Shown here piece by piece: positions 6,501 through 57,628 of a stretch of 64,000 nucleotides of DNA. Made by a program: the position numbers and the translations under genes. The notes under the pieces are model-generated. The model saw nothing but the letters and a program-made list of their open reading frames with translations. It was not told the origin of the DNA and searched no databases. This DNA is from Bugula neritina (Eukaryota > Animalia > Bryozoa), in NCBI GenBank assembly GCA_964035545.1, contig OZ037768.1, positions 19,141,700 to 19,205,699 on the forward strand. Direction: 5' to 3'. The first letter of the stretch is position 1; every line of letters starts with the position of its first letter.

Positions 6501-7412
6501 ATAATCATTATACGTGTATTTTCGGTTTCGTGACTGTAATCATAGTACTTTGGTTGTCATACCAAGTCTGTGCCCTTGTACACTCTGACACTACACGATT
6601 CTAACTAATTACATTACATTGAGTGCAGTAATGGAGAAATTGGTTAAAACCCTGTGTACTAAATGAGAGATATAGCAAAAGGAGTTATGTTCTCTTGAGA
6701 ATTTTCATGTGTGCTTCAAAGCGAATTTGTAAATATTGTTAAAGGACTTAGTCTATTAAAATTTCTCTGTTCTTGCATCTACTATATTGAATGAACTCAT
6801 GTATCTTTAATGTCTACAGAAAATGTTCCACAGCAGCTGTATCAATGGATTTGTTGTAGTTGTCTTCCAGCACTTTGTCTCAGTGTTCAAATAAACTTGC
6901 ATATATTCTGCATGTACATTGTATATAACAAACCTTCCATTCTGAAGTATAAATTTACACCCAAATTTCCTATATGGTGCCTTAAATCTACTTTTTATAG
7001 TAATAAATAGAAGGTGTATTACTGCCTAAAGTTTCTGCATTCTGTAAAAATATTTACTTATGTTACTCAATATGTGCTTTGATTTACTAATGAACTTAGA
7101 ATGTGTATTTTATCTTGTAGGGGAGCCGTTGCCTACGTCAGCTGCTGTTACACCTGTGTTATCGTGGTGCTAGTAATAGTACTTCTCATTCAGCAAATGA
7201 TCCTTATTAGTCAGAATATAACTATACAGGAATTCAACAGGTTTATACAGACAAGAGACTCTAGCGGCTCTCAGATAGCCTGGTGGAAGTCTTTCTTTGC
7301 TGCTGGCAATCCATATGACACTGGGTTTAGGAAAAACCTTGCATTGTTCCTCAGGAGGACTCGGCATGAACCAATCAGACATAGTCGAGATTGCGAGGAA
7401 AGTTTAGAATGA
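530..7412 (+). CDS. ZDHHC23: Palmitoyltransferase ZDHHC23-like (5'-partial; 7 exons visible)
   Basis: Phase-consistent exons 530-635, 1193-1376, 1993-2229, 3773-3955, 4460-4580, 5396-5572, 7120-7412. The DHHC-CRD reads CSHCNVKLPPRASHCNVCCQCYAVRDHHCIWLDQCIGLRNHRAF. The N-terminal IADRLRIPW matches the ISDRLRIPW I recall for ZDHHC23. C-terminal NITIQE and NPYDTGFRKNL match the TTxE/PaCCT-type motifs. Several TM segments. Start codon not identified in the window. Confidence 0.9.
1690..1953 (-). mobile_element. tRNA-derived SINE copy interrupted by a 140-bp insertion
   Basis: Matches the copies at 26976, 39803 and 55085 (ggagtaattacgac...accattggcctttactgggattt...gaacc...tttactaag...ctctaacccctaga). 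The 14-mer ctttactgggattt is duplicated at 1737-1750 and 1891-1904. Confidence 0.7.
4844..4976. repeat. 24-bp minisatellite (ctaggttactaggctaacaggctg), about 5.5 copies
   Basis: Direct tandem copies in a ZDHHC23 intron. Confidence 0.95.
5569..5790 (+). repeat. 24-bp minisatellite (tactgtaagtataagtatcctact), about 9 copies, containing the 5' splice site
   Basis: gtaagt recurs at 5573, 5597, 5621, 5645, 5669, 5693, 5717, 5741 and 5765. The first is the real donor. Confidence 0.95.
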
Positions 7413-8492: not shown

Positions 8493-17342
<8,850 letters not shown>

Positions 17343-18180: not shown

Positions 18181-21100
18181 TCAGCTTTTACCATCTTTAG
18201 GACTGCATGAGTATGTCACACCATCTCCAGATATGCCGACTGAAACAAAGTGATACACAATTGAATTCATTATTTTTTCTAGAATGACAAGTAACAGCTT
18301 CGTAATTTTACAATCTATAGTATTTGAACTCTAACATTATAAATGGGCTATGAACTTCTATCTACCCAAGATGTAGAATTACAGCTACAAATCTTAGAAT
18401 GCTTATATATATTCTGTGTACTGGTAGAAATTTAATGCTATTCCATATTAAGAAATAATAATAAATGGTTATGGAGTAAGGTCAAGGGAGCAGTCGTGGT
18501 CTACGGGTTAGAGTGTTTGCCTAGTAAGCACAAAGTCATGGGTTCAACCTGACAAAGGCCATTGGTGATGTTAGGAAGAGCATCAAGTCATAATTGCTCC
18601 TCTGCCCCATCTGAATAAATCCTTAGCCCAATTTAACAAAAACTCCTTTCACCGGGGGGTTTCTCACAGGGATGGTGACTATAAACTTACGTGAGATAAA
18701 CTTCTGTGAATTATAAAGTAAGGTTAGATACTTGTCCTGGAAGAACTATATATCAGATGCTGATAGCTGATTTATACATGGAATTTTACCTGTACGGCTG
18801 GAAGAACTATTTTCATGCTGTTTCATTGATCCATAATTAGGGGTGGGAGGTGTGTCGTCATTTGAACTGTGTTTGCTAGAGCTGGTGATTATATCTTCAT
18901 GACTCTACCAAGCACATTGTAGCAATAAAATAATGCTGCAGAGGATAATATGTGGGTAAATCAATGTCATAGCTGAGCTTTAGGTCTTAACATTACACAT
19001 GATATTCTCTTTATAGTAAAATTAAAGCAAAATCTTTTGAAAACTTTTGTATGGCAGTTCAATCACCTGCAGGTGTAAAACTATAAAGGTTTAACAAAGG
19101 TCAGGCTATGTCTGTGAGTTCAAATATAATTAATTGTGTAAGATGAAAGCCAACAAATAAGTGCTCAAACTGTGGCAGGAGCACAAAATTATATAATTGT
19201 TTATATTGGAGTGAATCAACTCATTACAAAAGCTCCACTAATTGTACAATTATTATATCAACAGTAAAGTTATGAGAATTATAAAATTACATCTAAGAAA
19301 AAATACCTTGCTAATACTGAGGCTCATTTCACACTGTTGAACAGGTTAATGTATAGTTAGTAGGCAAGGTCTTCTATTCACATGTTAACAATTTCATAAA
19401 ATACAGTACATGACTATATACTATATATTAACTCTTCATGTAAACTCTTAATCAATGACATCCATTCAGACTCACCAAGTTGCTCCTGTGATTATCTTCA
19501 GACCGTTTGAATTTTATCTTGAACCTTCTGCATGGCAACTTATCCCTAACATGAGGTGTTGTGAATATAAATACTACACAGTTGAAAAAGCCTTGTGCAC
19601 TGTCTCCCAAACCCTGAAAATAAAAAGTAATTTAAAATTGAGCTGAAGAGAAAAAAAACAATTTTCGAAATAAATTGACTGCATCTTACTAATACAAGCA
19701 TTTACAAATTATGGCTTTGAATTACCACTGGGTGAGTATTCAATTTTAATCCTTCATGATTATTATTTATAAATTTGTTTATTTGGTCACGTTTTGGTCA
19801 CCTTGCACAGCCGTGGTCCTGCGCCTCAAAAAGCTTCATTCATATTGATAAAAAAGAAAGTCTGCTACAAAAGCTGGTATTTCAACACTTTTCAATAATC
19901 AGCCAATAGAAAATGCTGACACATATAACATGCTAACCATATTTTGGTTTTCAAGTATAAATGCTACAACGAGAGTAGGAGAATTTACGTTACTCTAATA
20001 GTCTAATATAACTAACCTGCAGTGGTGCCAAATACATAGCAATACCGCTTGCAAGGGATGACTCGTTTGGTAAATAAAGAAAAAATCTTAGAGTTCCCCA
20101 AATCCTTGCAAGGATGAATACTAGAGGTACAAATAATAACTTCTTGTTAGCGTAGTTGACTGCAGTAGAGCGTGACGTCCTGTTATGGAGAGGGGTGTGG
20201 TCAGATGTTGAGGGGCCTGCCCCACCACCTTGATGCCTTTTCATCCGACTCACCTGAAAATTTCAATATAATATAGCTGTGCCATGCTGTTGCAGTATGG
20301 TATGCTAACATATATCTACATATAAGTACACACACACACAAACTGCACACACGCACACACACACACGCACACACACACACACACACACTGCACGTATACA
20401 CATGTAAGCCAACACACACACAATTCGCATTGCATGCCGTAAATATTCACTGCAAGTTATAAAGTAACAACACTTACATATTTCACAATGTTATACATCA
20501 CTTTTCCATACATTATGCATATAAATATGTACGATGCAATTTCCCAAAGTTTCCCAGAAAGCAGCTGCCATATGACCAACTCAGTTTCTGCTCCTGATTT
20601 TGTTGTGTTACGGGCAGAGATCCAACACCACCAGATGTCCTTCTTATTCAATTCATCGTACCCATATTTGTTGGAGATTGCAGTTATTATTAGAATGACG
20701 ATTGGAACCCCCCAGCAGATGAGATGAGGGATCAACCAGAGTTTGGTGGTGAGGTAGCGGTTCTGTCTTACCACTGTCAGGTATATGTTCAATGCTATAA
20801 CTGAAGTCCAGAAGAAGCTCATCAGTGATGCCGTTGATGCTGCCGCTGCCTGTATCTTGCAAGTTGTGTTCATATTAGTACTTATAGGGGTACCATTATC
20901 AGAGTTATTAGAATACACTTCTGGCACGTGAATGAAGCCTTCAGTTGCTTTGAGCACCCTGAAAAGAATTTCACACAATTTATATAGATCATTGTCGGCC
21001 ATTATCAGCAGACAAACCTTGATTCAGTTACTTTACTAAATTTTCTATTATACAACTATAATTATATCACTAAAATACTACTTGATAAGCCTCTAAATAC

Positions 21101-22579
21101 GAAACAATCATTTTGCACAAGATAAAAGGATAAGAAAAGAGCAGTGATGTCTAGAAGCATTAGGATGAAGGCAATGAACGGCAACGAACTTTATTGAACT
21201 CTCACTCAAATTGCTTCAATCATTCCATACATCAAACACTAGTAAAGAGTTTGTGCCAAGTGCATGAATTAGATCCGAAAGTTGAATGAAACAAGCAATT
21301 GAGTTGCTTGCTGCACACAGTGCTACAACACTGCATATTTTAGCAATGTCAGTAAAAATCTTGTTCTATAGGCCTATTAACTTGTGCATAATTTGCCTTA
21401 ATATCTTTGCATTTTATATGTATTTGTTCAATTTGTAATTACAAGAGAGGCTTGTTTTATTGCAAACAAGTCATGTGCATATTTACTGCAGGCAGGTGAT
21501 TCCTGTTTAAACATCTGAGCAATATTATAATAGAGTCCATAACTCCAAGACTATATTACCGAAGAGAATGCTCTCAGGCTCTTAATATTTCTTACTAGTA
21601 ACTAGTAGCTAGTATAGCTATAAGTAACTAATAACTAGTAACTAGTAACTAGTTTAACTAGTGACTATATAGTGACTAGTGACTAGTAACTAATAAATAC
21701 TACTATATAGTCTAATATGTATTTGGCTTAACTTTGAAAATTCTGCCAATATACTGAGTTTAAATGCATCAAATTATAATAAGGCTTACTTTCATCAAGA
21801 TGCAATTCACAAATTTTCAGTTCTTTAACATAATAGAACACTTTTTTCAGTTCTCATTCATATCTTATAATGTTCAGAGGTCTCTCAAGTTGATTCATGG
21901 TCACAGTTTCAGAACTACATCTCAATAAAGCATTTTTGAAGTGTCTGAGTTTGAAAATAACTTAGGACAGGTGTGCGATTAAAGAATGATTTTTGGACTT
22001 GAAATTCTTTGAATAGCTAGTAATATTTCACTTGAATATCAGACCACCAGGTACAGCAGCTGTTTCACACTATGCATGAAAGTTGAAACATCCTTTGAAA
22101 ACATTACATTACTCTATTCTCTACAAACACAAGGCATAGTGAAAAAGGCAGGCGCAGCAATAAAGTAACCGAAAAGAGCCTAGGTGTTCTTGATGAAAAA
22201 CATTTGCAAAAGAATATATGTTTCCCGAAACTTTTATCAGCTCCCCAAAACAAAATTAGCAAGACAAATGAAGAACATAGGCTATTAAAGTTTCTTTATC
22301 ACTGCACCTAGCCATAGCTCCTTACCAGACAACTCCCAGGAAGTTACTGACTGCAACAAGCAAGTCAGAGCACGACAGATAGGCTAAGAACATGCGGCCT
22401 TTGGTCCTGAGTTCTGACATCGTAACCAGAATATACATAATAATGAGAGATCCACAAATCGACATCACGGACATGACACAGGTTAAGACAGCGTATGTAA
22501 TCCCTAGTGCCACTGGCACCTGCGGTGAAGTGTCGCTCTCTGACCCAAAATTTTCTGAAGCAAAGTCACTGATATCCAT
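18181..22579 (-). CDS. GPR157: GPR157-like G-protein-coupled receptor (cAMP-receptor-like 7TM family), about 427 aa, 6 exons
   Basis: Exons 22579-22326, 20958-20478, 20253-20017, 19613-19476, 18904-18790, 18239-18181. The last exon is less certain; read-through to a stop at 18746 is the alternative. Motifs: SICGSLII, LAYLSCSDLLVAVSNFLG, C.IQ...S..SFFWTSVIA, HLICWGVP, WWCWI, LSGKLWEIASY, NKKLLFVPLVFILARIWGTLRF, LQGLGDSAQGFFNC. Confidence 0.85.
18486..18692 (+). mobile_element. tRNA-derived SINE, near full length (about 200 bp)
   Basis: A-box-like tggtctacggg and B-box-like ggttcaacc. The body ggccattggtgatgttaggaagagcatc...taattgctcc...ctgaataa...ttctcacaggg..ggtgactata is shared with 39803-40002. 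Confidence 0.8.
20328..20422. repeat. (CA)n-rich microsatellite
   Basis: Imperfect CA run in a GPR157-like intron. Confidence 0.9.
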
Positions 22580-22976
22580 ACTGTGTAAAGATATGAAAAC
22601 GTGCAAGGGGTAGAAATCTTTCAGCACAGCAACAGAGCACCTGCAGCCACCTGCCTGTCAGTCATCTTTATGGCATGCAGTATACAAGAAAATCCTGTGC
22701 AGATGATAGGCATTCAAGCTTACTGCTGTACAATGATAGAGGAGCAGCTACTATTACTAGATAGTGTATGAAAGTTATACCAGGAAGTTGCTGAACTACT
22801 CTCTCATTTACTAACCTATTTCCAATGAGTTCACTCAATGCAACTTATTTATCTTATCATCATCTGCCAATACTTTCCGCAGCGATAGCTTTTATTTGGC
22901 ACTCAGCCAACTCAAACTTGTCATTTGACTTCATATCTGCATTCATCATATAAAACGTGCATATGATGTGTGTACT

Positions 22977-27644: not shown

Positions 27645-29267
27645 CTAGACTTGACTTAGACAAAGACTTTTAGTACTTGGGGTGGGGAGAGAAGGTGTCC
27701 GTCTATATGCTACGGAACTGTATTTGCTCCCCACGTTATCTATATTATTGTTACTACTTTTATTACAAGTCATTTGAAGAAAACAGCTTCTCCAGGCTGT
27801 CACCGTTTTTCCAGACCAAATCCAAAATCCAGAAGTTATCCCAACAATGTGATACATAAAATATTTGAGCATAAATATAGAGTATTCTGGTTTCCGTTTG
27901 TCCACTTTACAGGGACAAGCTACGGAGGCAGCCCACTCCTCCCGATAATGCTGTTCATAAAGATGGCAGGCTATCACTATAGTTGCTGGAACTGTGTATA
28001 TGATGGAAAACACCCCTATTTTTACCATGAGTTTTTCTAGTTTCTTAATTTTTTGCTCTCCTTGCTGTTTGATGGTATTTCTGATTCCAAAGAGACTTAC
28101 AAATCCAGCTAACAGAAATGATATGCCCAGAATTAAATATACAAACAAAGGTATGAGTACGAATACCCAAAGTTTAGTTGAGTCAGTGTTGCCAATATAG
28201 CAGATCCCTGATACAGGGTCTCCATCTACACTGGCAGTGGCTAATATAATAATACTCTTAATGGAGGGAACGATCCACGCAACTATGTGAAAATACTGAG
28301 AGTAGCTAGCTATGGCTTCTTGTCCCCATTTTAAACCAGCGGATAGAAACCATGTGAGGCTTAAAATCACCCACCAGATGCACGCTGCCATGCCAAAAAA
28401 GTAGGTCAGCAAAAATACGACTGTGCAAAGAGGCGGGCCGGTGGTGGCATAGTGAATCATTTGCTGACTGCACCCGACAGCTTGCCTTCCAAACGCTAGT
28501 CTGATTACATATCCTAGTCCTACCATGAAGTAGCAGGCAGAGAGAATAATGATGGGCCTTTCAGGGTAAACAAATCTTTCTCTGTCCAAGACAAATGTGA
28601 TAACTGTGAGGATGGTGGAGACGCAGCAGAGAATGCTCCAAGAACCAATCCAGAACATTGTAAACCTATGAGAGTCAGGTGTAAAGTAGTTGTCTTGACA
28701 TCGAATTGCACAGTTAGGCACCCCAGCTGTATGCACTTTGTTGAAGTAGGTGGAAGTCTCATTAACTCCTATTAACAGAGGATCATTGCACCTGCAGCTA
28801 CATCTTCTCATCTTGCTGACTATTTCTGCAACAAAAAGCAAAGCGTGAAAGTTTTGTACTAGTACCTTGTGGCCTGTAAACATGAGAGAAGCTATCAACT
28901 CATACACAGTAAAGTGACTATCAAGTATAGTATAACAGTCAGGCTTTGTTATGGAATAGCTGTAAAATGTAACAAATTACTCTTCCTTTTTGTGGTGTGT
29001 CAAAACTATCAACATAATTAAAACTATTAACCAACTGTCATTGAAAATGAATTAAAAATATATTTAAGCTAGTGTCACAATCCATAAAATATTATAAGTA
29101 TTTTAATCCAAGCATGTCACAGTAGGAGTGTTGGTTAAAAATAGGGATGTTTAGTAAGTGTCTATAATTTGCAAAATAAAATAACTTGTGACTGGAAAAT
29201 TGTTTAGGCAAGTGCATCCCATAGAATAAATCAACTTCAAAATAAAATCATGACCTAATTGAGAAAC

Positions 29268-29330
<63 letters not shown>

Positions 29331-32300
29331 TGGGAAAGAAAAAGAGAGATTCTAATATAGACTGATCATATTGGATTAATTGGAGTATTATTACTATTAG
29401 AATGCAAAGGAATACAATATATTGTGCGGTTTATCAAGACAAGCCCACAGCCCCCACGGAAAACTTCTAAATTCAAAACCTAAATTACAAACTGCAGATG
29501 TTTCAGGTCAGAGGTGTTTTGGTGTTGAAATTACCAAAAATTATCAAAATCTTTAGAGAATCATTTTAAACTGATTTGTGTACATCAAGTGTCAGAAAAA
29601 TTAAAATAACTGGAATATCCAATTAGAACAAACTTCAGCCTGCTGTCACAGCTGCAGCAGCAGTTCATGTTTCTACTTGAGGCCAGTTTTATTTTTCTCT
29701 GTAACTCTCTAACATTATCGTGATTTACTGTCACTTGTCAAAAATTGAGTGATTGTTAATGAGATATAAATCCTGCAATGTATACAATTATTGGTGAAAC
29801 ACAATAGTGGCATTTCATTCAAATTTGACACACACACAACAAGAATGTATATTTAGCAAACTGCCTATAGAAACTTTTCACCATACTGAAACTAATTCCA
29901 TTGTATTTATGTTGAATTATGTCATCTAAATAAGGAAAACGATAAACTTTGTAACTGTATTTCAATGCATTTGCAGTTCGAAATATAACTACAGGACAGA
30001 TATTTCTAACAAATGATATTTTGCATGTTCATTAATAATTGCAAGCAGTTAGAATAACAAATAAAATAAAATAATATGAGTTTTGATCTCTAATATAATC
30101 AAGGATTATGAAACTCATAAGAAACATTATAGTTAGTAAATTTGATTTGTAATTAAACCTCAACAGTTACATTTAATTTTAATTAACAAATACTACTAAC
30201 ACCAATAGTGCAACTACTTTATGCCTAAAATAATCCTTATTGAAACCTTTCAGGTGGTAATGGTGATAATGAACATTTTTAGCTTGAAGACATCACAGCT
30301 AGTATTTATTATACCTTTTACAAATTAACTAACCTAAAAAATTATTATTAAAAATTCTAAAATTACTTTAATATTTCTGCTCAAATTATTTTGCTGGATT
30401 CTGTAATTACGAACTAATAAGTGTACCTAGTATTCTGGTCATCTGCAGAAACTATTTGCAGAGACTATCTGCAGGATATAGCAGGACCAACTGCCATTGC
30501 TCTTTGAACTAACTTACTAATTCTTGTTTTTTTATCAAATTGCAAAGTTAGCACTTAGCTGGTGGCTTGTTCCAGCTTTATATAACAAGTGTATACCAGC
30601 AGTTCTACCAAGGTTTAGGAATACCCAGCAAATTATGTAGAAATTCTCTTTATAGTAAACTTTTTTGTACAAAATAACATGAGTCCTACAACTATCTATA
30701 ATTGTTACACAGCAATGTAATTTTCAGCTCTTTGGACTACGAGAGGCAATAAAATTGATAGTCCTAATAGTAACAATCAGTAGTTAAAGCTGATTTATTT
30801 AAAAATATTATTTTTACACTTTCACTTTAAAATAAAATTAAAGGATAGATGGTTTTAACCTAAGGTAGGCCGCTAAAGTATGCCCTCACCCACATAGAGT
30901 GCTGTTTTTATGAGCAAAGAGATACAGCAGATTTGAGTTACACTTATACCAGATTATGAGATTATCATGTACAGTGTAGTTATATTATATGCATTACATT
31001 AATCTACGATTTGATCAAGACTTAAGGTAAATGGATTAGAAAGGATTATATATCTTAAAAACGCATTTAGCCTAACTTAAGCTCAATGTTAGGGTGTAAT
31101 ATGCAGTATTATGCTTCACTTTTTTCTATTATTAGCTTGTCTACGCAAACTAATCCAGGCAGCAATCACGGCAGCTGCCTCCACTGAACCAGCTGCTGCT
31201 ACTAAACTGTCCTTTCCCCATGCGTACAGATTGAGGAATTGCATTTTCCTTTCAAAATCTTAGCTCTAACAGAAATACTAACAAGTATGTTGTGAATAAA
31301 TTGTTATTAAAATATTGAACAATGTTTAATTTACGAATTACCAACTTATGTGTCACCACCAGCTTTATGTGTCAGAGGAAACCAAGTTCAGTACTAAGTG
31401 ATGCCAAAAGCCCTTGATAAAAACAACCTGGTTAATGACTTTCAATGATTTGAGCCGCTCAGAATTTTGATAACTTTTAAGATGAAAAGCACCTTGCTAG
31501 CTGAACAAGCATTGCGCTGTTCAGTTCACACATAAGCTCGCGGTTAACTGTGCCTAATACAAGAAAAATAGAGTATATTGAAAGTCATGTAGTTGGTGTA
31601 ATTATGGTGGTAGTCTTAACATAACCATCCTGCATCTTCCAGGATCACTACCATATCAAACAGCTATTATATTCTAATAACATTAGGGGTGTAACACACC
31701 TCGTGGTAGCTAAAGTCTACAGGAGTGGGGTTACTACTCAAGTATGTTATTTAGAGATTTGCTTATCGCAATGTCAATACAAATTTGTGTTTTCTACAAA
31801 CTGCTCATTATTTTAAACAAAACAATAGGTTAGGTTTGCACTGAACAAGCAAAACATCATGATACTGTAAGATAATGCAGTTATGCTGTGTGTAGATGAG
31901 ACTGTTTACGTATGTACAAATATTATCATTTACTGTCAACTACTGTGGATATTACAAATGTGCTGGAATTTATACCAACAACAAGCTATTATAAGAAGCT
32001 TGAAGAACGTGGATTTTTATTTAACCTAAGTTCCAACACTCTAGTTGGGTGTTTAAGTGTGCACCTACATGATTAGTCTACAAAAACCAACTTCTAAGTA
32101 TACAACATATATTTCTAGAGCTAACGCCTACCCCTCAAATCCAAGGCTGTTTCTACCATGAAATTTGGCATCTTACTAGGATTGCAAAACTTGCTACATT
32201 ACACCTCCACTCATTTACTGTTTTATTCTTTGCATAGAGCACAGGCCAATAGGTTTATTATAGTCTATATAAAGTTTATAATATAAACTTTATATATTGT

Positions 32301-34258
32301 GTTATGAAATATCCTAGCACTTATGAAATTGGGTTGTATTAGTTAAAATAAACTATTTATGGTCAAATTTATAGCCCCCTTCACCTCCCACAGTGATGCT
32401 TTTTCTCATAACTTGAATAGTTGTTGGAAGTAGGTTGAAAACTTCTCCAAATTAATATTTATTAGCTAGCATAAACAGTTTGAAAGTTCAGTGACATTAA
32501 CTGTTTATTTTTAATCATCTGCTGCAAGACAAAATAAAAAAATGTTTCTTAACTGACAAAATAATTCATAAAATGGTTGCATTTCAAGGCTGTCAAACAG
32601 CTAGCAATCTGCCTTGTCACTGAGAGTGGAAGAATATTGAAGCTAATTATGTTGACAGGTGACATGTGACACAAGTGCTCTACTCAACTCTATGGAATGG
32701 CTAGAGTGAGTTAATGAGTTCTTATATCTGCTCAATTTAAATCCTATTTCTAGGTTATTAGAGCAGAATAAAATGCAAATTCTTATTTACTAATCAAGTA
32801 TAATTAATATATTTAGAAGGTCTAGTACTATTTCCAATTCCAGTTGAAGTACCGCTATTTGTGAATTAATGCGATACCCTTCACTCAGTCACACTGGTAA
32901 TTGCTAATTAGAATAATATTCTACAGTTTTATTTGAAATATCTCTCCTTTGCAAACTATGCCAGGCCTATAGAGCAATGTTTTGTTCTACCAGCTCTGCC
33001 TTGTTAGAAATATATTTCCTAACTGGCAATCTTTCACAAGAATGTTGTTATTTTTAGCAAGTTGTGGAGTAACATAATTATTCCCCATTTAGCCCAAACA
33101 TGTAGACAAGAGTAAATGTTGGAATAGATTACTTGCCAAGTGAGCATTGATGATATTGTGGTTAAGGCAGCACCAATTATCAAATTATTAATATAACATT
33201 AACTCATTGTTTGGTATATTAGCATAAATGTAGCTTTGCTGTAGGTCTGCTGCAACATTGTTTAGGATATGTAGAGGAATAGGCAAGGGAAAGATGATAG
33301 CTGTAGTCATATGTATAGATAATACAATAGTGACACTTTAAGTGTATCATGGAATGCATAGACTAATCAACATGACAGTTGATAAATATTATTATCTTAT
33401 AACTTTTGCCACTACTTATAAGGCTGTATTAGAAGAAAGCATGTGTCAATTTATACTACAAATAAATGAGCACAACTTTATCAAGTACGTTGTTGATAAC
33501 TATTATTAACCTAAAGGAAGTGCTCCACCTCTTTTACAGTAGAAAAGAACGTAAGAAAAAACCATATAATATAATATATACAAATAACGCAAAGTGCCAT
33601 AGCTAATGATGTAACAGCCTTCAAGACCCAACCTGTAAAAAGCTCACTAATTACTATGACACTTACCAGATCCTGGTTGCAAGGAAAGATACTGGTTAAC
33701 ATCTGTGCCTTCTTCTGAACCTGCTTTGGGCTTTATATTCTGTTTATTTTGAATAGATTTGACAGGTTTTGTTGGAACTGGGGGTAAGGTTGTCGTTGTT
33801 ACGGCAGATGTGTTGAAATCCATACACAGGTTTTCACTGTCTCCGTATTCTGGCAAGTTCTCACAGTTCATTTTGTCCGGCCAGGAGAAGCCATATTGTC
33901 TCATGAGAGGTGCACAGCCAGCCTTAGCTCTCTCACACACACTTCTACAGGCAGGGAGGGGCTTGTGGTAGTTCTGTATACAGATGGGGGTGTACAGACT
34001 GCACAGAAAGAACTGGAGGTCCGGGGAACACTGAATCTCTACGAGCGGCCAGAACTGATGAACCTCCAGACCAGCCTCTTCTTGATTGTCGTGGTTAAAC
34101 TGGTTTGGCATATACGTCTCATTATAACCAATTCCCTTACACATGGGAACTGTAATTTCTTGACACGTTCTCTTTTCGTATCTCGAACTAGAGTCACTCT
34201 TACTTATTCCAAATGTTAAAATTATATGACCGAACAGCCAGGATAGATTTAGCTGCAT
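27645..34258 (-). CDS. FZD5/8: Frizzled 5/8 Wnt receptor, about 590 aa, 2 coding exons
   Basis: Exon 34258-33667 has a signal peptide and CRD (CQEITVPMCKGIGYNETYMPNQFNHDNQEEAGLEVHQFWPLVEIQCSPDLQFFLCSLYTPIC). A phase-1 intron follows. Exon 28825-27645 has the 7TM region with YPERPII, GLKWGQEAI, KLEKLMVKIGVFS, KTxxxW (KTVTAW) and the C-terminal PDZ ligand LSQV, as in FZD8. Confidence 0.97.
29268..29328. repeat. (GA)n microsatellite
   Basis: Dinucleotide run in the frizzled intron. Confidence 0.95.
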
Positions 34259-34322
34259 TTTAATGGTTCGCTAGTGTTTCATTCTATCACCACCAGTGAA
34301 GGTAGACAATCGAGCGGTTAAC

Positions 34323-43173: not shown

Positions 43174-46100
43174 TCACACACTAACGGATGACCTTGAACT
43201 CCACTTGCTAGGGGAGTTACTGCCCCCTGTCATATTAGCATATTCCAGCATTGTCTAAAATAGATTTAAAATGTACAAAAATATGCATTTTGCGACTCTT
43301 TGAAGTCAAGGCAAGTCCAGTAATGGTTTGCATAAAACTTCAAGTCAAACGCCAAGTCAAGTAATGATTTCAGCTGTCTTGATTCAATTTGAATTTATTT
43401 ATTATGTAATACAATTCTTCTTTAAACATTTACATACATTTAACAAAAAGCAATAGATATTTACATGTTTTTGGTAGTTCAAGTTAACATAATGACTTAG
43501 CTTCGATTTTAATTAATTTAAAGTTAATATTTATTCATAAAATATGAATAGTACAGTTTTTGTAATGCAGTTGAAAAAGTCATCTAGTTTATATAGCAGC
43601 AAATTTTGTTTAATAAATCAGAAATTCTTTTCAATTGGTGGAACAAATTTGAGATATTTTCAGTCGACTATTCAACAAATACTCATAATTTGGGTTTACC
43701 AACTTTATTTGAAAACTCAAGATTAAAATGAGCAGTTTGTGACTTTTGTTTGCCTAAACTTTATAAACTAGCAGCAAGTTCATCAAGATATTTAAGTCAC
43801 GTTAAGTCGTGGTTTTAATAAGCTAACTCGAGTTAAAAAAGTTCAAGTACTCAAGTTGACAACTGCCAATGTGACTTAAACCTACAAGATCTCTGGATTC
43901 CACTCTATTATAAAATAAATAAAATATTTATTAGTCTTTCTTTAGTTATGAAAAAAACTGTATGTTCAACAGATTAATGAATCAGTATAATCAAATTAGA
44001 GAGAGACATACATAAAAACTGCACCAGGAAAAAATAAATAAAACAAAAGTACATAAACAAAAGATGTATTGAATAGAAGTAAAAGCATTAAAGAAAAGCA
44101 TCTAAAAACACTAATGAAAATGATAATGTGGATAAACACAAATTATGCTTGAAAACTTAAAACAGTTAATTTTCTACGGGTACCATGACCTTTGGCTTAC
44201 CTTGTATATGAAGGCATAGTGAGCAGTAGTATGAACAGCTCCCGCCCTATCTTGACGCAGCTTATAAACACAGTTCATCACATCCACTGTGTAACTATCA
44301 TCGTATGTTTGCAGGCATCTTTCTATGGCCAGGAAGGTGCCTGTGCGGCCAGTACCAGTGCTACAAAATATCGATATTACAATGACTCATTGCTGCCTTT
44401 CACTTTCCACCATTAATTTGATGCCGTGCTGGCGCAGTGAGAACTTTAGTATTATTAGAAAAGGTACTACAGACAGAGTTACCAGCAATCCACAGCAAAA
44501 TACCTTATTCTGAATAGTATAAAACAAGTAGTGAACTACAGTATCTAAGCATCATGGTTTTGATTATAAAACCAGTAAAAATATACATGTCGCGTAACAA
44601 ACAATTCTATTACCTGCAATGCACGACAGTTGGGCCATGACTGATTTCCATATATGGGCGTGCATCTTTTATAAACGTCAGGAAGTTGCATACTGACGAC
44701 GGAGTTCCTTTGGAGGGGAAATCCAAATATTGAAAGTGAACAACATCGCGACACAGGTTTAGCTGAAACAAGCATATAATATAATACATATGTAATATAT
44801 GCTGCAAAATATACTATATTATGCTCATGCGGCACACATTATATTTCACATGTAATGCATATTATAAGGGATAAAGAAGAAGCTAAACATCAGTATCTGT
44901 TGAGGATGGTAAGGCTGTTGCTATGGCAGTGTTATAAAATAGTTGAGGTCTTGAAAAAACTAACTTTTGCTTAGCTCTATAAAATATTTTGAGTAGAAAT
45001 AGTAACACCTTGCTGTGATTCAAACCTGGAACTGTGCAGATGTTGAGGTTTGATACATATTTGATGATACAGTGCAATGCTCAAAAATGAGAAAAGACTT
45101 AGGATTAACTATCACTACATCGCAATGCTTCAAACGGGATGCTCATATGGATTACATCGAATGAAAAGCCACACGTTCCTATGCAAGTTGTACAAAGATG
45201 TCTTTTCTAAATAGAAGACAACTCCTCTTTAACTTTTGCCAGTTGTACACGAACTTTGTTGCTAAGTTATAATGTAAACAAACATGGCCGCCCCATGATA
45301 ATTTTATACAACTCACTCTGCCCCTCCCCTCAAAATACAAATTGTTGAATCCTTAGATGAATATTACCAACACTATTGTCACAGCTAAAATGTAGATGGC
45401 TACTCTTCTTGACTTTCACATTAGCATATAGAGTTAGAGCATTCCTAGCAAAAACAAACAAAAATGTATACAGTTGTTGAGATACAAACCTCCATATTCT
45501 TTATAACTAAGCAGCTGAATATGTACTGATCTCTAATTAGCTTCTTCTTCAGGAAGATTTCGTAGTCACCGTGAACTGAGATGGAGTCAACCCCATCTGA
45601 CTGAGGCAGGTACTGAGCACACCGGTACTACAAGAGATATTCCGTAGTGTGACTAACACTCAGTAATGTGAATAACACTCAGTAGTGTGACTAATACTCA
45701 GTAGTGTGACTAACACTCAGTAGTGTGACTACAGCACTCAGTAGTGTGACTAATACTCAGTAGTGTGACTAACACTCAGTAGTGTGACTAACACTCAGTA
45801 GTATGACTACAGCACTCAGTAGTGTGACTAATACTCAGTAGTGTGACTAACACTCAGTAGTGTGACTAACACTCAGTAGTGTGACTAACACTCAGTAGTG
45901 TGACTAACCCTCAGTAGTATGACTACAACACTCAGTAGTGTGACTAATACTCAGTAGTGTGACTAAGACTCAGTAGTGTGACTAATACTCGGTAGTGTGA
46001 CTAACAAGATATAAACAGAGTAAGAAAAAGCAATATATAGTCTTGCAGTTTTTTATATTTCCAGTGAAAAATCTCAAAAGATCCTCATTTCAAGGGTTGC

Positions 46101-49100
46101 TAAACCCAGTGCTTACTTACATGAAATATTTTATGAGCACGCAGTGATACAATTTCAACATCCCCCAGTTCTAAACTGAGTGACCTGCTGACATAAAATC
46201 GGAACTTCTGATTGGACCACACAGAAATCACCAGCTGAGTTGAGGCAATTTTATCGACTTACATCCATAACTGCCTCTCCTATAGCAGTCAGTCTACATA
46301 ATTTCTGACAGCACACTTTTTCCAATTGGTGAATTGTTGTTAAAATTATTATTCAATCATTACTTTCTTAGAGTTGTCCTCTCCTACCTGGTTGTCCTCG
46401 ACCCAGTTCATCAGCATGACAATAACTTGTGACTGATTCTCCCAGACCATAGTCCAGAAGTCAACCACGGTGTGTTGCAGTGGAGCCTGGGTGGCAATAT
46501 ATGCTTTGGGGGATCCATTGTAGCCCTTTGAAAATCATATATTCAATAACACTGAACCAATAACTAAATAAACCTCTAAAACTATGTAAAATGGTAATTT
46601 CATTAAAAAAAGATTATTCTATCTTAGAAATTGGTGACTTAGTTGTTTAAAACATGTACCTTTATATAATTAGCATTAATGTATTGGGAGTTGCCTGTTC
46701 TTGGCTTGGATGTGAGGATAACCCTTGATGACTCAACTAAAATAATTGAAAAATGAAATTTTACAAGGAATCAAAAAAATTGAGCAGATTATCTAGGTTG
46801 AAAAATATAACTGCATGTATATGTGAGTAAAGCACGAAAATTCAGTGTTAGTGTGTGTAAAACTGACTTGTAAAGAGTGATTATAAAACACTATCAGCTA
46901 GTGACTCAATTCTGTCTGTATTATATCATACTTGTAATTTATTGCTGCATATTTCAGCACTTCAGTATACACAAATGGGACAATTAAACATTCTTACCAT
47001 GTAATATTTTATGCCGATAAAACAGCTTTAAAATGATATATTTCTGAAGCTCATTCATAAATATAACCAAACTCAAAAAGCAAAGCAATGGCAGAAATAC
47101 CTACGGGGTATAACATTGGCGTATCTGTTCTTAGTCTGAGCACCTTCAGGCAAACTGCACATTTTAGGCATGTTGCTTGGAATACTTTTGAGCTCCTCTT
47201 CTAAATAGTCCATCTCTAACGACCTTGTAGAGAGCTTGCTCAAGGTCATTGTGTTAGTGTAAGAAAGCTGAAAACACACGTTAAATACCTGAAGGTACAG
47301 CTTGCAGTAGAAAACTTGGAAATAATATGTTCAAGGGTGAAAAGATATAATTTATAAGTAGGTATATGAAGTTCAAGACAAAACTCTAGGCTAGTCTGAC
47401 ATGTTTAGGTGATACCCAGTTATATATCATATTATGTTATATGAGTTACTATTTACCATACAGCACTTCTACACAGCTAAATTACCAACAGGGTTTAAGG
47501 TGGCAGACAGTTTTCATAAAACACTGATATTTGTTGCTGTAGTAGACACTGTATGTTTATGAAAGAGCTAAGAATTGTGCACGAGTGTAACAAAGTTTTG
47601 ACAAATGAGCAGCTTTGATAGAAAATAGCACTGGATACAGCTCAAGAAAACAAGGCAACTCATTTTGTAAATAAAAGCTACTTTTAAGATGTTAAATAAC
47701 AAATCCTAATTTGAAAAGACGTTGCTTTGATATTAATTTCATGTTACAGCTCGTGCACATAATAGCAATTCCCAGTTTAGACTCAACACTATGAACATAG
47801 CCAAGATCCTAAATGCATAGTTTGAAAAACAGAGTTCTGGATGCCGTGTTCTCAGGCAACACCCGTATAATTACTGAATGCCTATAGCCTAAGGCTATTA
47901 ATTATGAGCCACTCTACTTGAATACAGCTCCCTATATAAGCATATCAGGATATGACATCATCACAGTCAGCATACCTCATCAGTGGTAAATCCCGGGTTT
48001 GTTTTAAGAGTAGACCGGAAAGACCTGTTTCCATGTCGTTTAGCTGTACTGAACTCGCCAGTGGTGACAGATAGAGAACTTAGGCTATAGTTATCATCGT
48101 GATGAATACTCGGTCTCATGAACCGTCTGCGTTGCTGCGACTTGTGCCGCTTGAAGATAACCTGCAGAAAGAAAGCATCAAAGAGACTTCAAACTAAATG
48201 AAATATACAATAACTTCTTATATAACCACAGTACTAAAACCTAACTCCACTATCCACCTTCACATTGTATGTGCAAACCAAATTACAAACAAGTACAGAT
48301 TGTAGGTTATCGTTCTCTCACTTGGCTACTTAGAAACGAAATCGGGAGTTTAGTGAGCATTGACACTGCTTACAAATCTTTGACATATTATTGTAGAAAA
48401 AAAAAATTATAATTAAAAACATTTCTCAAAACATCAAGTTATATAGATCTAAGAAACTATAGGTATTTTGAAGACAGCTATACTTGTAAATTCAGTAATG
48501 TGTGGGTTTAATAGGCAGTGTTTGAAATATAATCCATATGCACCCAGATGTATCTGGTTCAACAAATTATGTACAGTATAAAGTCACAAAGTAAAAATTA
48601 ACTACCCTAGAGTATTTTAAGTAAAGCTATTATGTGAGAAATAATTGAGCGTTAAATTAATTCAAGATTCTATGGTTTTAAACAGGAATGTGTTTTGACA
48701 TCCTTAACTTAGAGTGACTGACAACTCAACAGTATTATGGGATCTCCAACTACCAATGTAACATTTAGGTGCAGTAAAAGAGAATATTTAGTAGCCTTAG
48801 TTCTTTAATTTTTTTGTTAAACTTTTGTTTGGAGCCCGGGTTGAAATTATCGAAAAAACATAACTTACTTAACTACATTTGTCATCTGGAAGTTTTTCCA
48901 ATTTATCTTTTACTGCACCTACTCCCAAATTTGCTCATAGCAAATATACAATCAGAATAGGCTAATTGAGAAATAAAACAAGGCAATAGGGAATTGAAAC
49001 TGTATAGGGAATTGCGCTAAATGTTGTCTCACAATTGAAACATGTTGGTGGAATTAACTGAAATGTAGTTACACTTTAGCAACAAAATTGGATTAGAAAG

Positions 49101-52100
49101 AAATATGAGCACAAGACGCATTTTGCTAAAATATAAAAATGAAAAATTGCTAAAGGAGATTCTGAAATTATTTAGCATGAGTATCTGCAGAAACATTTTT
49201 ATGATTCAAAATTTTATCAATTCAAATAGCTAATTAAATGTCAGATTACAAATTTTAGGTCAATGAACAGCCTTAAAAAAATATTGAATGACAATCTCCT
49301 ATCCATCCTGAGACATCTATAGGTGGTTTATAAATACATTCATCACCTACAGCTTTAAACCCACATTTCAGTTTCTGAAAACTGTTTTTAGCAATTTTCA
49401 TCTGTGACACGACAACTCTGAAATCAGACTTACCACACTGATTATGACAAGCCCGATAATGCAGACTAGCATCACAGCAGAAATAGCTCCTATTATTGGA
49501 TTATTCAGCACTTTTCCATCTTCAATGACATTAGGAGCTTGCGTCGCCTGCTCTATATCGGGTCCGTACGAAACATCCTGGATCTACACAACCAGTTACA
49601 CAATTCATGTTTATTTCTATTGAAGTTATCAACTAATGACCAACAGTGAAAACTATTGCATACCATAGCAATATTTTCTGGCAAAGAGCCATTAATAGAT
49701 ATGGGTGATGGCCAAGAGGGCTATCAGGCCAACAGGGATATGGCCCACTAGCCTATCAGGCCATAGGACTAGCAATTCATTCAACTCAAGTGTTTAATGT
49801 CTCTCCTGTTCAATAATGTCTACTTGTTTTAGACAAAATATAACACTCAAGAGATTTATAGTGTTAAAACAAGTTGTAACAGCTCTAACCGGCAACAGTT
49901 TTACAGCAAAACTGCAATTAAGAATAGTAAGCATCATATATCTCAGATTAAAACCAACAAGTTTTCACACCAACATTAAGATAGAATTAGCAATCGAACC
50001 GTCTGTATGAAAACATCCTCAGAAAGATCTTGTCGCTTTTCTTCACTTTCAATAAGCTTGAACACCCTCCTGGTGAGTGCAGGATTCACCCTGCCACTGC
50101 CATCAGCAATAGCTACCTGTAAGAAAACAGAACACCTATTACTAACATAGCATACTCTCCACATTAGCTTTACAAACTCATTTCCAGTAAGTCCTACGCA
50201 AAGAACTACCAGAAACTGGTGTTTATCTTTGTGAAAAATTGTAGCAGTGAAAGCTTACTTTAACATCGATCCTTCCACTTTCCAGAGCCTCCTTTTCATC
50301 TGCCAAGTAAAGATCTGTTTCTGCTTTAATGACGATGCTTCGTTTCCGTCTTTTACCAAGTACAGTGAGACACTCAGTTTCAAAGAGCTGCACTTCAGCT
50401 TCAATGGTCTCGATTATCAAATTTTTCAACATTCGTTTAAATTTGTTGGACATCTCGCAGAAAGTTGACCATTTCATATTTATGGATACAATAAAATATG
50501 CAGGTAGCTTAATTGCAGGTGAAGTACTGTCAGTAGAACGCCCACCTGTTACAGAGGGCTGGGTGAAAGCTGCTTCCGTTGTGGGTGCAGGAGTGGATGT
50601 AGAAGAAACCCTTGAGGGGGAGGTGGATAAATCAAGTTTTGGACCAACGCTGCTAGTGCTGACAGGTGAAGAGGGAGATGGTGTGACAGCAGTTGTACTG
50701 GAGTATGTTGAAGGAGTTGGTGCTGTTGGTGTAGTCAGTTTAGTAGTAGGTTTCTTCAAAGTTGTGGTGGGCATTGTTATGGGTGTAGTTGGCGGGGTAG
50801 AGGGTGTTGTGGTAGAAAATGTACTAGGAGTTGTTGGTGTGGTAGTAGTTGTTGGTGGTGTGGTAGGAGTTGTTGTTGGCTTGTTAGTAGAGGTTGTAGT
50901 AGTTGTTGGTGGTGTGGTAGTAGTAGTTGGTGGTGTGGTAGGAGTTGTTGTTGGCTTGTCAGTAGAGGTTGTAGTAGTTGTTGGTGATGTGGTAGTAGTT
51001 GTTGGTGGTGTGGTAGGAGTTGTTGGTGGTGTGGTAGGAGTTGTTGTTGGCTTGTCAGTAGAGGTTGTAGTAGTTGTTGGTGATGTGGTAGTAGTTGTTG
51101 GTGGTGTGGTAGGAGTTGTTGGTGGTGTGGTAGGAGTTGTTGTTGGTTTGTTAGTAGTAGTTGGTGGTGTGGTAGGAGTTGTTGTTGGTTTGTCAGTAGA
51201 GGTTGTAGTAGTTGTTGGTGGTGTGGTAGTAGTAGTTGGTGGTGTGGTAGGCGTTGTTGTTGGCTTGTTAGTAGAGGTTGTAGTAGTTGTTGGTGGTGTG
51301 GTAGTAGTAGTTGGTGGTGTGGTAGTAGTTGTTGGTGGTGTGGTAGTAGTTGTTGGTGGTGTGGTAGTAGTTGTTGGTGGTGTGGTAGGAGTTGTTGTTG
51401 GCTTGTCAGTAGAGGTTGTAGAAGGGGTTGTGGGAAACTTTTTTGGTGTTGATGTTGGTATTGTGGTTGGTGTAGTAGACACTGTTGTTTGTGTCGTTGT
51501 ATCGAAATCAGGAGGCTCCACTGGAGGTTTAGGAACATCTGAAGTCTTGCTATTAGGAGGTCTTTCTGAAGAGGGAGCTGCGGTGGATGGGGTTGATTGA
51601 GTAGGTGGCTTTTTTTTATTCTCATCATCCTCGATGCTAGGAAAGGATGATGACGTCTCGTCAGTTTCAGCTGAACTCCCAGGCTAAAATATATCATATA
51701 ATCAGGTAAGACTATAAAGAGTTGGTGTAATATTATTTAACTTACAACTCAAAACTAGAACCTTTCTCAGATAAAAAGTAATGAATAAAGTATTACACCA
51801 TAACTGAAACAGAAATAAAGAATGCTGATTTTACCTTCCAGTACACTTATATGGTTTAATAATGTGTTAATAAGGATATAAAGTGCATGTTTTCTTATCA
51901 AAGCTTGCTAACCTCTAGAGTAGATAAACCTGGTTGCTTCTTATCATCTGTTGGTAAGTAAACATCTGCCGGGCGACTACAATGTGACATAACAGACAGA
52001 CATCACCATTTTACTATTCTATACAATTATTACACTAGCTATAAATCCAACACCAAAAACAGAGGCTGCACAGCTGGCAACTAAAAACATTTAGGAGCTG

Positions 52101-55100: not shown

Positions 55101-57628
55101 GACTGAATGCCTTTTCTAACATTACCATTGGTCTTTACTGGGATTCGAACTACTGACCTCGTGTTTACTAGGCCAGGACTTTAACCACTTGACCAATTAA
55201 AGATGTCAAATTAAATCTCTCTAACTGCTAGCACAACCCCTAATATACAAGCATATAATTGATATCGTAGGTTGAAAGTTTGTTTACATGTTCAAAATGA
55301 TCATCAAAATAATATGAGCCATGCAACTAGAATCCCCTATTTTAAAACAACTAACCACATGAGTTGTTTAGCAACAGCAACAGTAACTGGTGATGCAACA
55401 ATTGAGTAATAGAATGAAACTATTTTGGGCCTACATGATGACATGCTGCTTCCTTAGCCAACTCTATAGACTTAGATAATGGAATATGTATTAGCAAACT
55501 CTATAGACTTAGATAATGGAATATGTATTAGCAAATCCTATAAACTTAGATAATACACAAGTCACCATACCCGAGCCTGGTCCTTGCACATGAATACTAC
55601 GATGGGGTACTTCGGGTCCATCAGTATAAATGAGATTTCTAAAAATAGAAAACTAATACATTAATAGTGTAGGTATTTGAAGCATACAATTCATAAAAAC
55701 CCACCTAGTTTTTACTCTTGTTTTATTTTTTGAGTTGATAACAGCTTTTTTAGTTATTTGTAAAAAGATTTCTTGCAAGATACCACTATTAAACATCCTA
55801 GATACATTCCATAAGTAATAATATATGTTAACATTTTTGGTTATTTACTGAAAGTATGGCAATAAATGTAATATACAGTCTGTAGAACCTTCATCCCACC
55901 AGCATCTTGAGAGATGGTAGGATGAGAATGTGTAGCTTTTTTATCTTTTATATAGAAACTATAGACAAACATGAGTTCACATAATAGTCTGACTTTAGGT
56001 TGGATCCAAAATGCTGCCTGAGCAGGCATGTAAGAGACTAGTTTCAGAGTCATAACGTTTATGAAACAAATCCAACAGGTGCCTTAATTCTACATTCATT
56101 TTAAAAACATCAGAATCTTAGATTTGATTACGTTGAATAACTGGTGCTCAGTTCACATATTCACAGAGGAATCTAAACTGTAAGATGCAGAACCTGTTTT
56201 CATGTGTTACCACTTCTAATATATGTATATATGTATATATATATATATGTGTAGATATTCGTAGATATGCTTATATATGTATATTGGACACGGTAGGCTA
56301 CTTGATATGTTGATGAGGCTGACATATACCTAGCAAAAAAATACCAGACTCATTGGGTGCATTTTATGAATGGGGTTTACTTTGGGAAGTTTGTAAATTT
56401 TTTTCAAGTCTGCTATGCAATAACTTTAATCCCAATTTGATTGAATTCGGTCAGTAGTTGGTGTTAAGCTGTTTCACAGTGACAACCATCAATGTGCAGA
56501 TGCAGAACAATCACTCTAATACTGAATGTTTTACACCAACACACAGTGATACAGATGTTCAAATATAAGGCTCTAGAGTCTAGCCAAATATAATCTAGTA
56601 AAACTGTACAGTAAGTATTAGCATTAGTTGATATATTTTAGTTATATAGAGGTTAAATAGCAAGTTTGTACAATAATGTATATAATTTTATAGTGTGATG
56701 ACATTACAACATATAACTGTAATAATATAACTTTTTCAACCGTGTAGCATATTATTTCCCTTGTTGAATAGACGAATTCCTAATAAACAGTTCAAGGGGT
56801 TGCTACCAAAATAATTAAGTCTAAGAATTTGTTCAAGTGTGAGTTTTAAATCAGCATAACATGCACCTTGAAACACTTTCCTGTACACCAAAAGCAAATG
56901 GAGAGAAATAAACATGGAAAGAGGTGAGAGAAATAAACATGGAAAGGGAAAAAGTAAACATGTAAAAGGGGGAGGAGTAAACATGAAAAGGGGAGGAGTA
57001 AACATGGAAAGAGGGAGGAGTAAGCATGGAAAGAAGGAGGAGTAAACATGGAAGAGGGAGGAGTAAACATGGAAGAGGGAGGAGAAAACATGTAAAGGGG
57101 AGGAGTAAACATGGAAAGAGGGAGGAGTAAACATGAAAAGGGGAGGAGTAAACATGGAAAGAGGGAGGAGTAAACATGGAAAGAGGGAGGAGTAAACATG
57201 GAAAGAGGGAGGAGTAAACATGGAAAGAGGGAGGAGTAAACATGGAAAGAGGGAGGAGTAAACACGTAAAGAGGGAGGAGAAAACATGTAAAGGGGAGGA
57301 ATAAATATGGAAAGAAGGAGGAGTAAACATGGGAAGAAGGAGGAGTAAACATGAAAAGGGGGGGAGTAAACATGTAAAGGGGGAGGAGTAAACATGAAAA
57401 GGGAGGAGTAAACATGGGAAGGAGGAGGAGTAAACATGAAAAGGGGAGATAAGTAAATAGTCAACAAACAGACCCGTTGAAAGGATTCAGCCCTTCTTCT
57501 TCATCAGTTGGAGAATTAATAGAGGAGAGCGAGGCTTCATTGATAGGGTTGAACTGCAGCAGAGGTGAGGCTGAGACACACACCAATGCTAAAGTCACTG
57601 GGTATATAATCCTACAGACCAGCATCAT
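43174..57628 (-). CDS. Receptor-type protein tyrosine phosphatase-like protein with mucin ectodomain and one degenerate PTPRR/STEP-like domain, about 1066 aa, 16 coding exons
   Basis: Phase-consistent exons 57628-57474, 55638-55571, 53692-53645, 52791-52710, 51976-51913, 51683-50259, 50116-50000, 49583-49434, 48161-47976, 47267-47105, 46736-46660, 46525-46388, 45627-45490, 44762-44614, 44360-44201, 43254-43174. Signal peptide [20 protein letters not shown]; T/P repeats; KRRKR; [26 protein letters not shown] followed by KRHK. PTP motifs [61 protein letters not shown]. The small 5' exons are less certain than the PTP exons. Confidence 0.88.
45644..46006. repeat. 19-bp minisatellite (cactcagtagtgtgactaa), about 18 copies
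   Basis: Tandem array starting about 16 nt from the acceptor at 45628. Confidence 0.95.
48766..48921. mobile_element. MITE of about 155 bp with TA-bounded TIRs (Tc1/mariner-type by inference)
   Basis: taggtgcagtaaaag (48766-48780) and cttttactgcaccta (48907-48921) form a perfect 15-bp inverted repeat. The interior is shared with five or more nearby copies. Confidence 0.85.
50790..51480 (-). repeat. Coding mucin-type tandem repeat (TTPPTTT / ST[DN][10 protein letters not shown])
   Basis: Internal to exon 51683-50259 of the receptor gene. Confidence 0.95.
52092..52253 (+). mobile_element. MITE copy (family of 48766)
   Basis: taggagctgtggtggaaaa...cgggttgaaatt...tctagaacacaggcttttctcaatttctctcttacagcaccta. 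Confidence 0.8.
53148..53292 (+). mobile_element. MITE copy (family of 48766)
   Basis: tagatgcaataaaggagaaa...gttgaaatt...ctagaaccc...aatttctctgttagcacaccta. Confidence 0.7.
53451..53611 (-). mobile_element. MITE copy, opposite orientation
   Basis: taggtacagtaatggagaaa...gcctgtgttctaga...aatttcaacccgcg...tttctccactactgcttct. Confidence 0.8.
54401..54545 (+). mobile_element. MITE copy (family of 48766)
   Basis: taggagcagtagtgaagaaa...tctagaacataggcttttctcaattgctccattactgcaccta. Confidence 0.8.
54595..54740 (-). mobile_element. MITE copy, opposite orientation
   Basis: ggtgcagtggtaaagaaaagcccgtgttct...aagaactt...tttctccaccatagtaccta. Confidence 0.7.
55085..55195 (-). mobile_element. tRNA-derived SINE, truncated copy
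   Basis: ggagcaattatgac...accattggtctttactgggattcgaac...tttactaggcc...taaccac..gacca. Confidence 0.75.
55454..55554. repeat. 37-bp tandem repeat, about 2.7 copies
   Basis: Unit aactctatagacttagataatggaatatgtattagca, ending about 16 nt from the donor at 55570. Confidence 0.9.
56905..57447. repeat. Purine-rich minisatellite of about 21-22 bp (gtaaacatggaaagagggagga), about 25 copies
   Basis: Tandem array ending about 25 nt from the donor at 57473. Confidence 0.95.

Follow-up and report, generated by a model that had tools for sequence, protein, structure and literature searches.

A bryozoan member of an ancient bilaterian family of putative receptor pseudophosphatases in Bugula neritina

A stretch of 64,000 nucleotides from the bryozoan Bugula neritina (assembly GCA_964035545.1, contig OZ037768.1, positions 19,141,700 to 19,205,699; hereafter the window) contains a gene for a receptor-type protein tyrosine phosphatase (PTP), located on the minus strand at 57628–43174. 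In the spliced model the gene has 12 exons and a predicted product of 980 amino acids, comprising a signal peptide, a Thr-rich stalk, a SEA/MAD-like domain, one transmembrane helix and one PTP domain, in this order. With a probability of roughly 60%, judged from sequence and from analogy with characterised proteins, we consider this gene to be the one Bugula representative of an ancient family of bilaterian type I receptor pseudophosphatases, which is related to the R7 group of PTPs and whose members would act as scaffolds or adaptors. Receptor pseudophosphatases as a type are known from a few vertebrate cases (IA-2, IA-2beta, PTPRU and D2 domains). New here are the clade-level finding and a lineage-specific remodelling of the pocket. 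The clade is apparently uncharacterised: no description of the family or of its motif was found in the searched literature, although prior cataloguing in phosphatome reviews is possible.

Residues are numbered here as in PTP1B. The Bugula domain has the features of a classical PTP, namely a match to the PF00102 profile, a CX5R motif (Cys 44618, Arg 44347) and the phosphotyrosine (pTyr) recognition loop KNRY, and it keeps Y46, C215 and R221. Features of active PTPs that are missing from it are the Asp of the WPD loop (FPS), the Ala at Cys+2 (Thr) and Gln262/Gln266 (His/His). The WPD loop reads Asp178-Phe179-Pro180-Ser181-Lys182, with Phe at 44720–44718 and Ser at 44714–44712. The P-loop, VVHC|STGTGRTG, is interrupted by an intron at 44613–44361 and carries Thr217 at Cys+2, the position of Ala in active PTPs, and Thr219 at Cys+4 (Cys 44618–44616, Thr217 44359–44357, Arg 44347–44345). 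The Q loop, AVHTTAHY, contains His262 (44233–44231) and His266 (44221–44219). An initial annotation of this DNA had listed KNRY, the Cys, the P-loop Arg, FPS, His/His, the Thr of the P-loop, QAP and YLP, and all of them were found on the minus strand at the places it gave; it had missed the Lys at the F182 position, the Thr at the I219 position and the five upstream exons that extend the gene to 57628.

In PTP1B, kcat falls some five orders of magnitude with the D181A substitution and about 100-fold with Q262A (PMC10267100). Substitution of A217 alone, leaving a residue other than Ala at Cys+2, inactivates HD-PTP and is implicated in IA-2, and in both it spoils phosphate binding (PMC2661844). 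In PTPRU, a Thr at Cys+4 helps to occlude the Cys but is insufficient alone, and the protein functions as a scaffold that binds the substrates of its paralogue (PMC7320164). Because the Bugula domain is altered at all these sites, strong catalytic impairment is the safest conclusion. The earlier designation of the protein as a candidate pseudophosphatase is therefore sustained, in that the changes in the WPD, P- and Q loops make it most likely catalytically impaired. The Asp of LDFPS is unlikely to act as a shifted general acid, because Asp is frequent at position 178 even in LAR-type D2 domains; in the alignment it falls on T178, not on D181.

The gene is real and under purifying selection. 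A second B. neritina assembly (GCA_010799875.2), in which the proteins KAF6038151.1 and KAF6017319.1 match the locus, has identical catalytic-site residues, which disposes of the assembly error that had initially been allowed for. Within the species there are 2 non-synonymous and 34 synonymous changes over 299 codons (pN/pS ~0.016). Word searches and metagenome searches with single exons turned up orthologous contigs of genomic DNA in five further species (L001, L002/L003, L007/L053-56, L004/L057 and L006). Their splice sites fall at the same codons, and relative to Bugula they show dN of 0.13–0.26, with dS near or at saturation. This branch is probably bryozoan, because the placed contigs and Bugula form a clade with 100/100 support and derive from marine samples. 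All six species of the branch have His266, while residue 262 is His in four of them, Gln in L004/L057 and Asn in L006. The motif D-F-P-x-K is present in 5/5 species for which the exon was recovered, x being Ser, Ala, Val or Pro. The initial annotation had proposed to check whether orthologues share FPS and His/His under purifying selection: the selection is there and His266 is constant, but x in FPx varies and position 262 is not fixed.

After a family scan and a word search had left the clade open, the family was gathered by a large search with a profile of the Q-loop exon. This gave a large set of single-domain PTPs, 42–50% identical to the Bugula domain, that share WPx, HCS[P/T/S]GTGRTG and QAP. 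Among named organisms, the set takes in insects, crustaceans, a millipede, spiders, a sea spider, Limulus, bivalves, a cuttlefish, an annelid, nemerteans, Lingula and the hemichordate Glandiceps; database entries describe these proteins as uncharacterised, as mucin-like or as PTPN5/7-like. The best 150 matches included none from a vertebrate or a nematode, which does not prove absence. Used as a word-search query, the Tubulanus orthologue matched mostly two-domain receptor PTPs, and KAF6017319.1 yielded no further full-length protein of the Bugula branch. The best exon identities of the Lingula orthologue in the Bugula genome correspond to the PTP locus.

Phylogenetic analysis with IQ-TREE (LG+C20) places the Bugula branch inside the family clade (99/93; one change in 98% of bootstrap trees), and FastTree gives the clade a support of 0.986. 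The Bugula IA-2-like, HD-PTP-like, LAR, SHP2 and other PTPs fall outside it in the IQ-TREE analysis; the IA-2 label was checked, and the labels of the others are presumptive, from their motifs. The PTP phylogeny that had been proposed as a check thus puts the query outside the IA-2 group and within a separate bilaterian clade. A long stem (0.55) leads to the Bugula branch, whose tips are short. A transmembrane PTP (P0295/P0122; L050-L052) with WPE, QAP and an intact HCSAG P-loop branches as sister to the entire clade (99/95) and could provide a root for the loss of activity.

Residue counts over 57 full-domain family members show that W179, P180, C215, T219 and R221 are invariant (57/57). Position 181 is occupied by 12 different residues, with Asp in 7/57; this residue varies both in the family and in the Bugula branch, and therefore no acid is selected there. 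Spider, damselfly and bivalve (zebra mussel) proteins are among the members with WPD (P0059, P0087, P0105, P0125, P0066, P0134), reflecting either retention or reversion. Pro occupies position 217 in 51/57 members, Q262 is kept in 47/57 and Q266 in 56/57, and QAP, present in 53/57, is a trait of the clade. The only changes specific to the Bugula branch are W179F, F182K and Q266H, plus His, Asn or Gln at 262. Loss of constraint on the general acid and alteration of the P-loop are thus clade-wide and probably older than the protostome-deuterostome split. The initial picture of a lone, repurposed R7 member is not supported, since the missing WPD Asp, the altered P-loop and QAP are all ancient and characterise an entire bilaterian clade.

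The members also have a common plan, consisting of a Ser/Thr-rich stalk, a module of ~120 residues with two conserved Cys, a transmembrane segment, a YS[L/M]xS element and a [FYW]xNxx[FL]-type motif. No match to a consensus of the kinase interaction motif (KIM) precedes the PTP domain in any of the 57 family proteins. A juxtamembrane NxxF/L motif is present in 56/57, 44 by the strict pattern (5 in shuffles) and 12 as NP[T/S]F; the Bugula version is NPGF, lacking the upstream aromatic residue. Motifs of this NxxF type resemble PTB-binding motifs (PMC5821850). The Bugula exon aligns with the profile of the family ectodomain module at a probability of 96% (hhalign, E 4e-9). A structural model of the Lingula module (pLDDT 88) shows a ferredoxin-like domain, the closest fold being MAD12 of PCDH15 (Z 9.5, root-mean-square deviation 4.4, 111 residues aligned), followed by cadherin-23 MAD28 (Z 7.3), the mature ectodomain of IA-2 (Z 5.9) and dystroglycan (Z 5.9). 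The ectodomain module is not represented by any Pfam model, and a Foldseek search with it gave no match at E<0.001.

The family has kept the PTP fold, the Cys, the Arg and KNRY/F while freeing the general-acid position and changing the P-loop (A217 to Pro, Thr or Ser; I219 to Thr), and the Bugula branch has gained W179F, F182K and Q266H, with His, Asn or Gln at 262. We propose that these proteins turn over pTyr at a rate orders of magnitude lower than an active PTP, and that the PTP domain serves as a protein-binding platform, as in IA-2, HD-PTP, PTPRU and the D2 domains of receptor PTPs. Such a receptor could connect its cytoplasmic partners either to vesicle sorting or to a cue from outside the cell, such as adhesion, shedding or a force acting on the SEA/MAD domain; the NxxF motif would be a putative docking site of the PTB/FERM type. 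The retained Cys may be structural or redox-sensitive. Several observations weigh against this proposal: the Cys, the Arg, KNRY/F, Q266 (56/57) and mostly Q262 (47/57) are conserved, which would be compatible with residual or non-canonical catalysis or with phosphate binding, and seven members, from spiders, a damselfly, the zebra mussel and others, have WPD.

The R7/KIM PTPs (PTPRR, PTPN5/STEP, PTPN7/HePTP and Drosophila PTP-ER), which are active enzymes, likewise have a single PTP domain, and they provide the best single-domain matches in the PDB for the N-terminal half of the Bugula domain. In the ESM Atlas the ectodomain and transmembrane part of a family member lies nearest to PTPRR_N clusters (0.83; a lead only), and an R7-like ctenophore protein, the only R7-like row in the tree, adjoins the clade with weak support (91/46). 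The family differs from R7 in having no KIM (0/57), no selected WPD Asp, an altered P-loop and a long mucin stalk. The initially noted resemblance to R7 thus holds in so far as PTPN5, PTPRR and PTPN7 are the nearest solved single-domain relatives, but it is weakened by the missing KIM and the weak link in the tree. In Bugula itself, protein search, pattern search and a look through 36 PTP loci revealed no KIM/R7 gene, a result that falls short of proving absence, and KIM matches in the genome did not exceed chance.

The R8 receptors IA-2 and IA-2beta (PTPRN, PTPRN2) have the same plan of disordered stalk, basic cleavage site, SEA-like domain, transmembrane segment and single PTP domain impaired at WPD and A217. 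However, a separate Bugula IA-2-like gene (C2:1.761-1.769 Mb) lies outside the group of the query; position 217 is Asp in IA-2, in contrast to Thr or Pro in Bugula and the family; and there was no Pfam match to Receptor_IA-2 or RESP18 domains. PTPRU D1 and HD-PTP/PTPN23 also keep Cys and Arg while their WPD and P-loop changes lead one to expect loss of activity, and the Bugula domain shares Thr at Cys+4 with PTPRU and a residue other than Ala at Cys+2 with HD-PTP. Both differ from it in architecture and clade, and KNRY, intact in Bugula, is lost in PTPRU. By analogy, the Bugula protein would work most like IA-2 and PTPRU while being a member of neither.

The pocket admits other interpretations. 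The initial annotation had likened it to the PTP1B D181A/Q262A trap, so that the domain would be a natural substrate trap or pTyr reader, binding pTyr tightly and shielding substrates from active PTPs; we regard this as unlikely. The analogy is sound in that KNRY, Cys and Arg are kept and the equivalents of D181 and Q262 are replaced, and Lys182 and the two His would add positive charge near the pocket. It fails elsewhere: the equivalents of W179, F182, A217, I219 and Q266 are all altered in Bugula, His is bulkier than the Ala of engineered traps, and His262 is not constant across the branch (Gln in L004/L057, Asn in L006). For most family members, moreover, Pro at 217 eliminates a phosphate-binding backbone NH. 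PTP1B D181A/Q262A binds its substrate at ~400 nM, and to do so the engineered protein needs a closed WPD loop and contacts of Q266 (PMC10267100). A scaffold is favoured over a trap because the residues that engineered traps retain, namely the aromatic lid of W179 and F182 together with A217 and Q266, are all different here, and because most relatives have Pro in the phosphate-binding loop.

Distinctly improbable, in our view, is a slow, substrate-specific PTP or a redox switch, in which a low Cys-dependent turnover persists or oxidation of the Cys changes the conformation. The invariance of C215 and R221 (57/57) would suit such a role, as would the slow turnover retained by PTP1B D181A/Q262A (PMC10267100) and the redox sensitivity of the retained Cys in PTPRU (PMC7320164), but the Cys is also kept in many inactive D2 domains, so its retention is not diagnostic.

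There is a slim chance that the probably bryozoan branch rebuilt a long-dead PTP site, either into a His-assisted catalyst, with His266 (together with His262, Lys182 and Asp178) as acid/base, or for a ligand other than pTyr, binding non-protein phosphate such as phosphoinositide or using it as a substrate as PTPRQ does. The presence of His266 in all six branch species and of Asp178, Phe179 and Lys182 in each of the five for which the exon was recovered speaks for this, and a long stem (0.55) followed by short tips is the pattern of a functional shift; in PTPRQ, a WPE change redirects activity to phosphoinositides (PMC7320164). However, loss of the Asp long preceded the appearance of the His residues, which therefore did not make up for it when it disappeared, and Asp178 does not occupy the catalytic position. 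High conservation of the entire exon makes the invariance of single residues in five to six species weak evidence, and both HD-PTP and PTPRU were inactive on lipids when assayed (PMC2661844, PMC7320164). If the site had been rebuilt, chemistry would have been naturally regained or altered within a bilaterian-wide receptor pseudophosphatase family, and next to R7 and R8 the family would make up a third class of receptors with a SEA domain and a single PTP domain. Finally, assembly error, mis-splicing or a decaying pseudogene is already refuted at the DNA level by the identical residues in an independent assembly, the frame and splice sites kept in five other species and the low pN/pS.

The gene points to a further receptor pseudophosphatase lineage, present in arthropods, molluscs, annelids, nemerteans, brachiopods and hemichordates since the bilaterian ancestor, whose members databases treat as active PTPN5/7-like enzymes or as mucins. 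At the WPD, P- and Q loops these members offer a natural allelic series: some have WPD, most lack it and one branch carries His/His. Comparing them would test directly which residues separate catalysis from pTyr binding and from scaffolding. The fly member of the clade is probably Drosophila CG42327, which we take to be the only fly single-domain transmembrane PTP without a clear human orthologue, besides FN3-type receptors and IA-2; the assignment is made because many insect and crustacean members share the plan, and by elimination among the fly PTPs. No Drosophila sequence was among the search matches, and the literature found on CG42327 mentions it in screens only. If CG42327 is the fly member, the function of the family would be genetically testable at once.

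All exons of the Bugula gene lie on the minus strand. The probable first coding exon (57470–57628; donor position predicted) encodes the signal peptide and the acidic start of the ectodomain, and differs from the second assembly by 10 synonymous changes and 1 non-synonymous change over 53 codons. The exon at 50259–51683 encodes the Thr/Pro-rich, mucin-like stalk, with tandem repeats at 50821-51401, and, from ~50504, the first part of the SEA/MAD-like domain, as identified by hhalign against the family ectodomain profile; an RRKR furin-type site is at 50351-50340. The second part of this domain is in an in-frame AG/GT exon at 50000–50116 that aligns with the orthologues. The exon at 49434–49583, where the NCBI model KAF6017319.1 begins, completes the ectodomain and encodes the transmembrane helix (from 49496), and the juxtamembrane exon (47976–48161) contributes the conserved YSL-x-S element and the NPGF motif, with no KIM by alignment and motif scan. 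A candidate exon at 52787-52710 was discarded, as the differences between the two assemblies are mostly non-synonymous there.

The PTP domain begins in the exon at 47105–47267, with KNRY at 47132-47121. It continues through 46660–46736 (SRVIL to YINANYIK; Pfam PF00102, with splice sites identical in the orthologous contig L001), 46388–46525 (YIATQAP and DFWTMVWE; PF00102, E 1e-16) and 45490–45627 (QYLP, Leu at 45609-45607; placed by the frame and orthologous contigs). The exon at 44614–44762, single-copy in the genome, encodes the degenerate WPD loop DFPSKG (D178, W179F, D181S, F182K) and the catalytic Cys, and that at 44201–44360 the P-loop (A217T, I219T, Arg kept) and the Q loop (His262, His266). 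The last coding exon (43174–43254) encodes a Ser-rich tail, in which SKWSS is kept in relatives, and ends with the TGA stop at 43174. The seven exons from 47267 to 43174 are all bordered by AG acceptors and GT donors; as initially annotated, they form a single open frame to this stop, before which there is no second PTP domain. Four exons match Pfam Y_phosphatase (PF00102) above the cut-off, and the gene is single-copy in the B. neritina genome. The junctions agree with AG/GT positions in the orthologous contigs and with the NCBI gene models of the second assembly, of which KAF6017319.1 skips the exon at 46388-46525. Two intronic minisatellites lie within the gene, at 45644-46006 and 56909-57448 (a 19-bp unit x19 and a 22-bp unit x25), the latter yielding long spurious open reading frames of low complexity.

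Elsewhere in the Bugula genome there are large tandem expansions of receptor PTPs (C1:3.96-4.23, C3:7.6-8.1, C5:0.49-2.3 and C6:8.0-8.4 Mb). An R3-like PTP at C6:8425000-8431000 has two tandem WPD-loop exons that cover the same profile positions. Other PTPs with degenerate motifs (C3:17.50-17.53, C1:9.42 and C2:20.61 Mb), showing WPE with a CGTGC-type P-loop or WV/WT in place of WPD, are candidates for further pseudophosphatases. Intron-poor PTP genes with in-frame TAA/TAG on small unplaced contigs (C10:262-966; C201:57526-58122) are possibly contaminants (e.g. with a ciliate code) or pseudogenes.

In the window, a Frizzled gene with a Fz cysteine-rich domain and seven transmembrane helices (27648-34270, minus strand), presumably frizzled-5/8-like, lies directly downstream of the PTP gene and is also its neighbour on the contig of the second assembly. 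Further along are a GPCR-like gene with seven transmembrane helices (~19990-22660, minus strand), chromodomain and pre-SET/SET exons (~10500-17340, plus strand) of what, by its motifs, is presumably a SUV39H-like histone methyltransferase, and DHHC palmitoyltransferase-like exons (~430-7410, plus strand).

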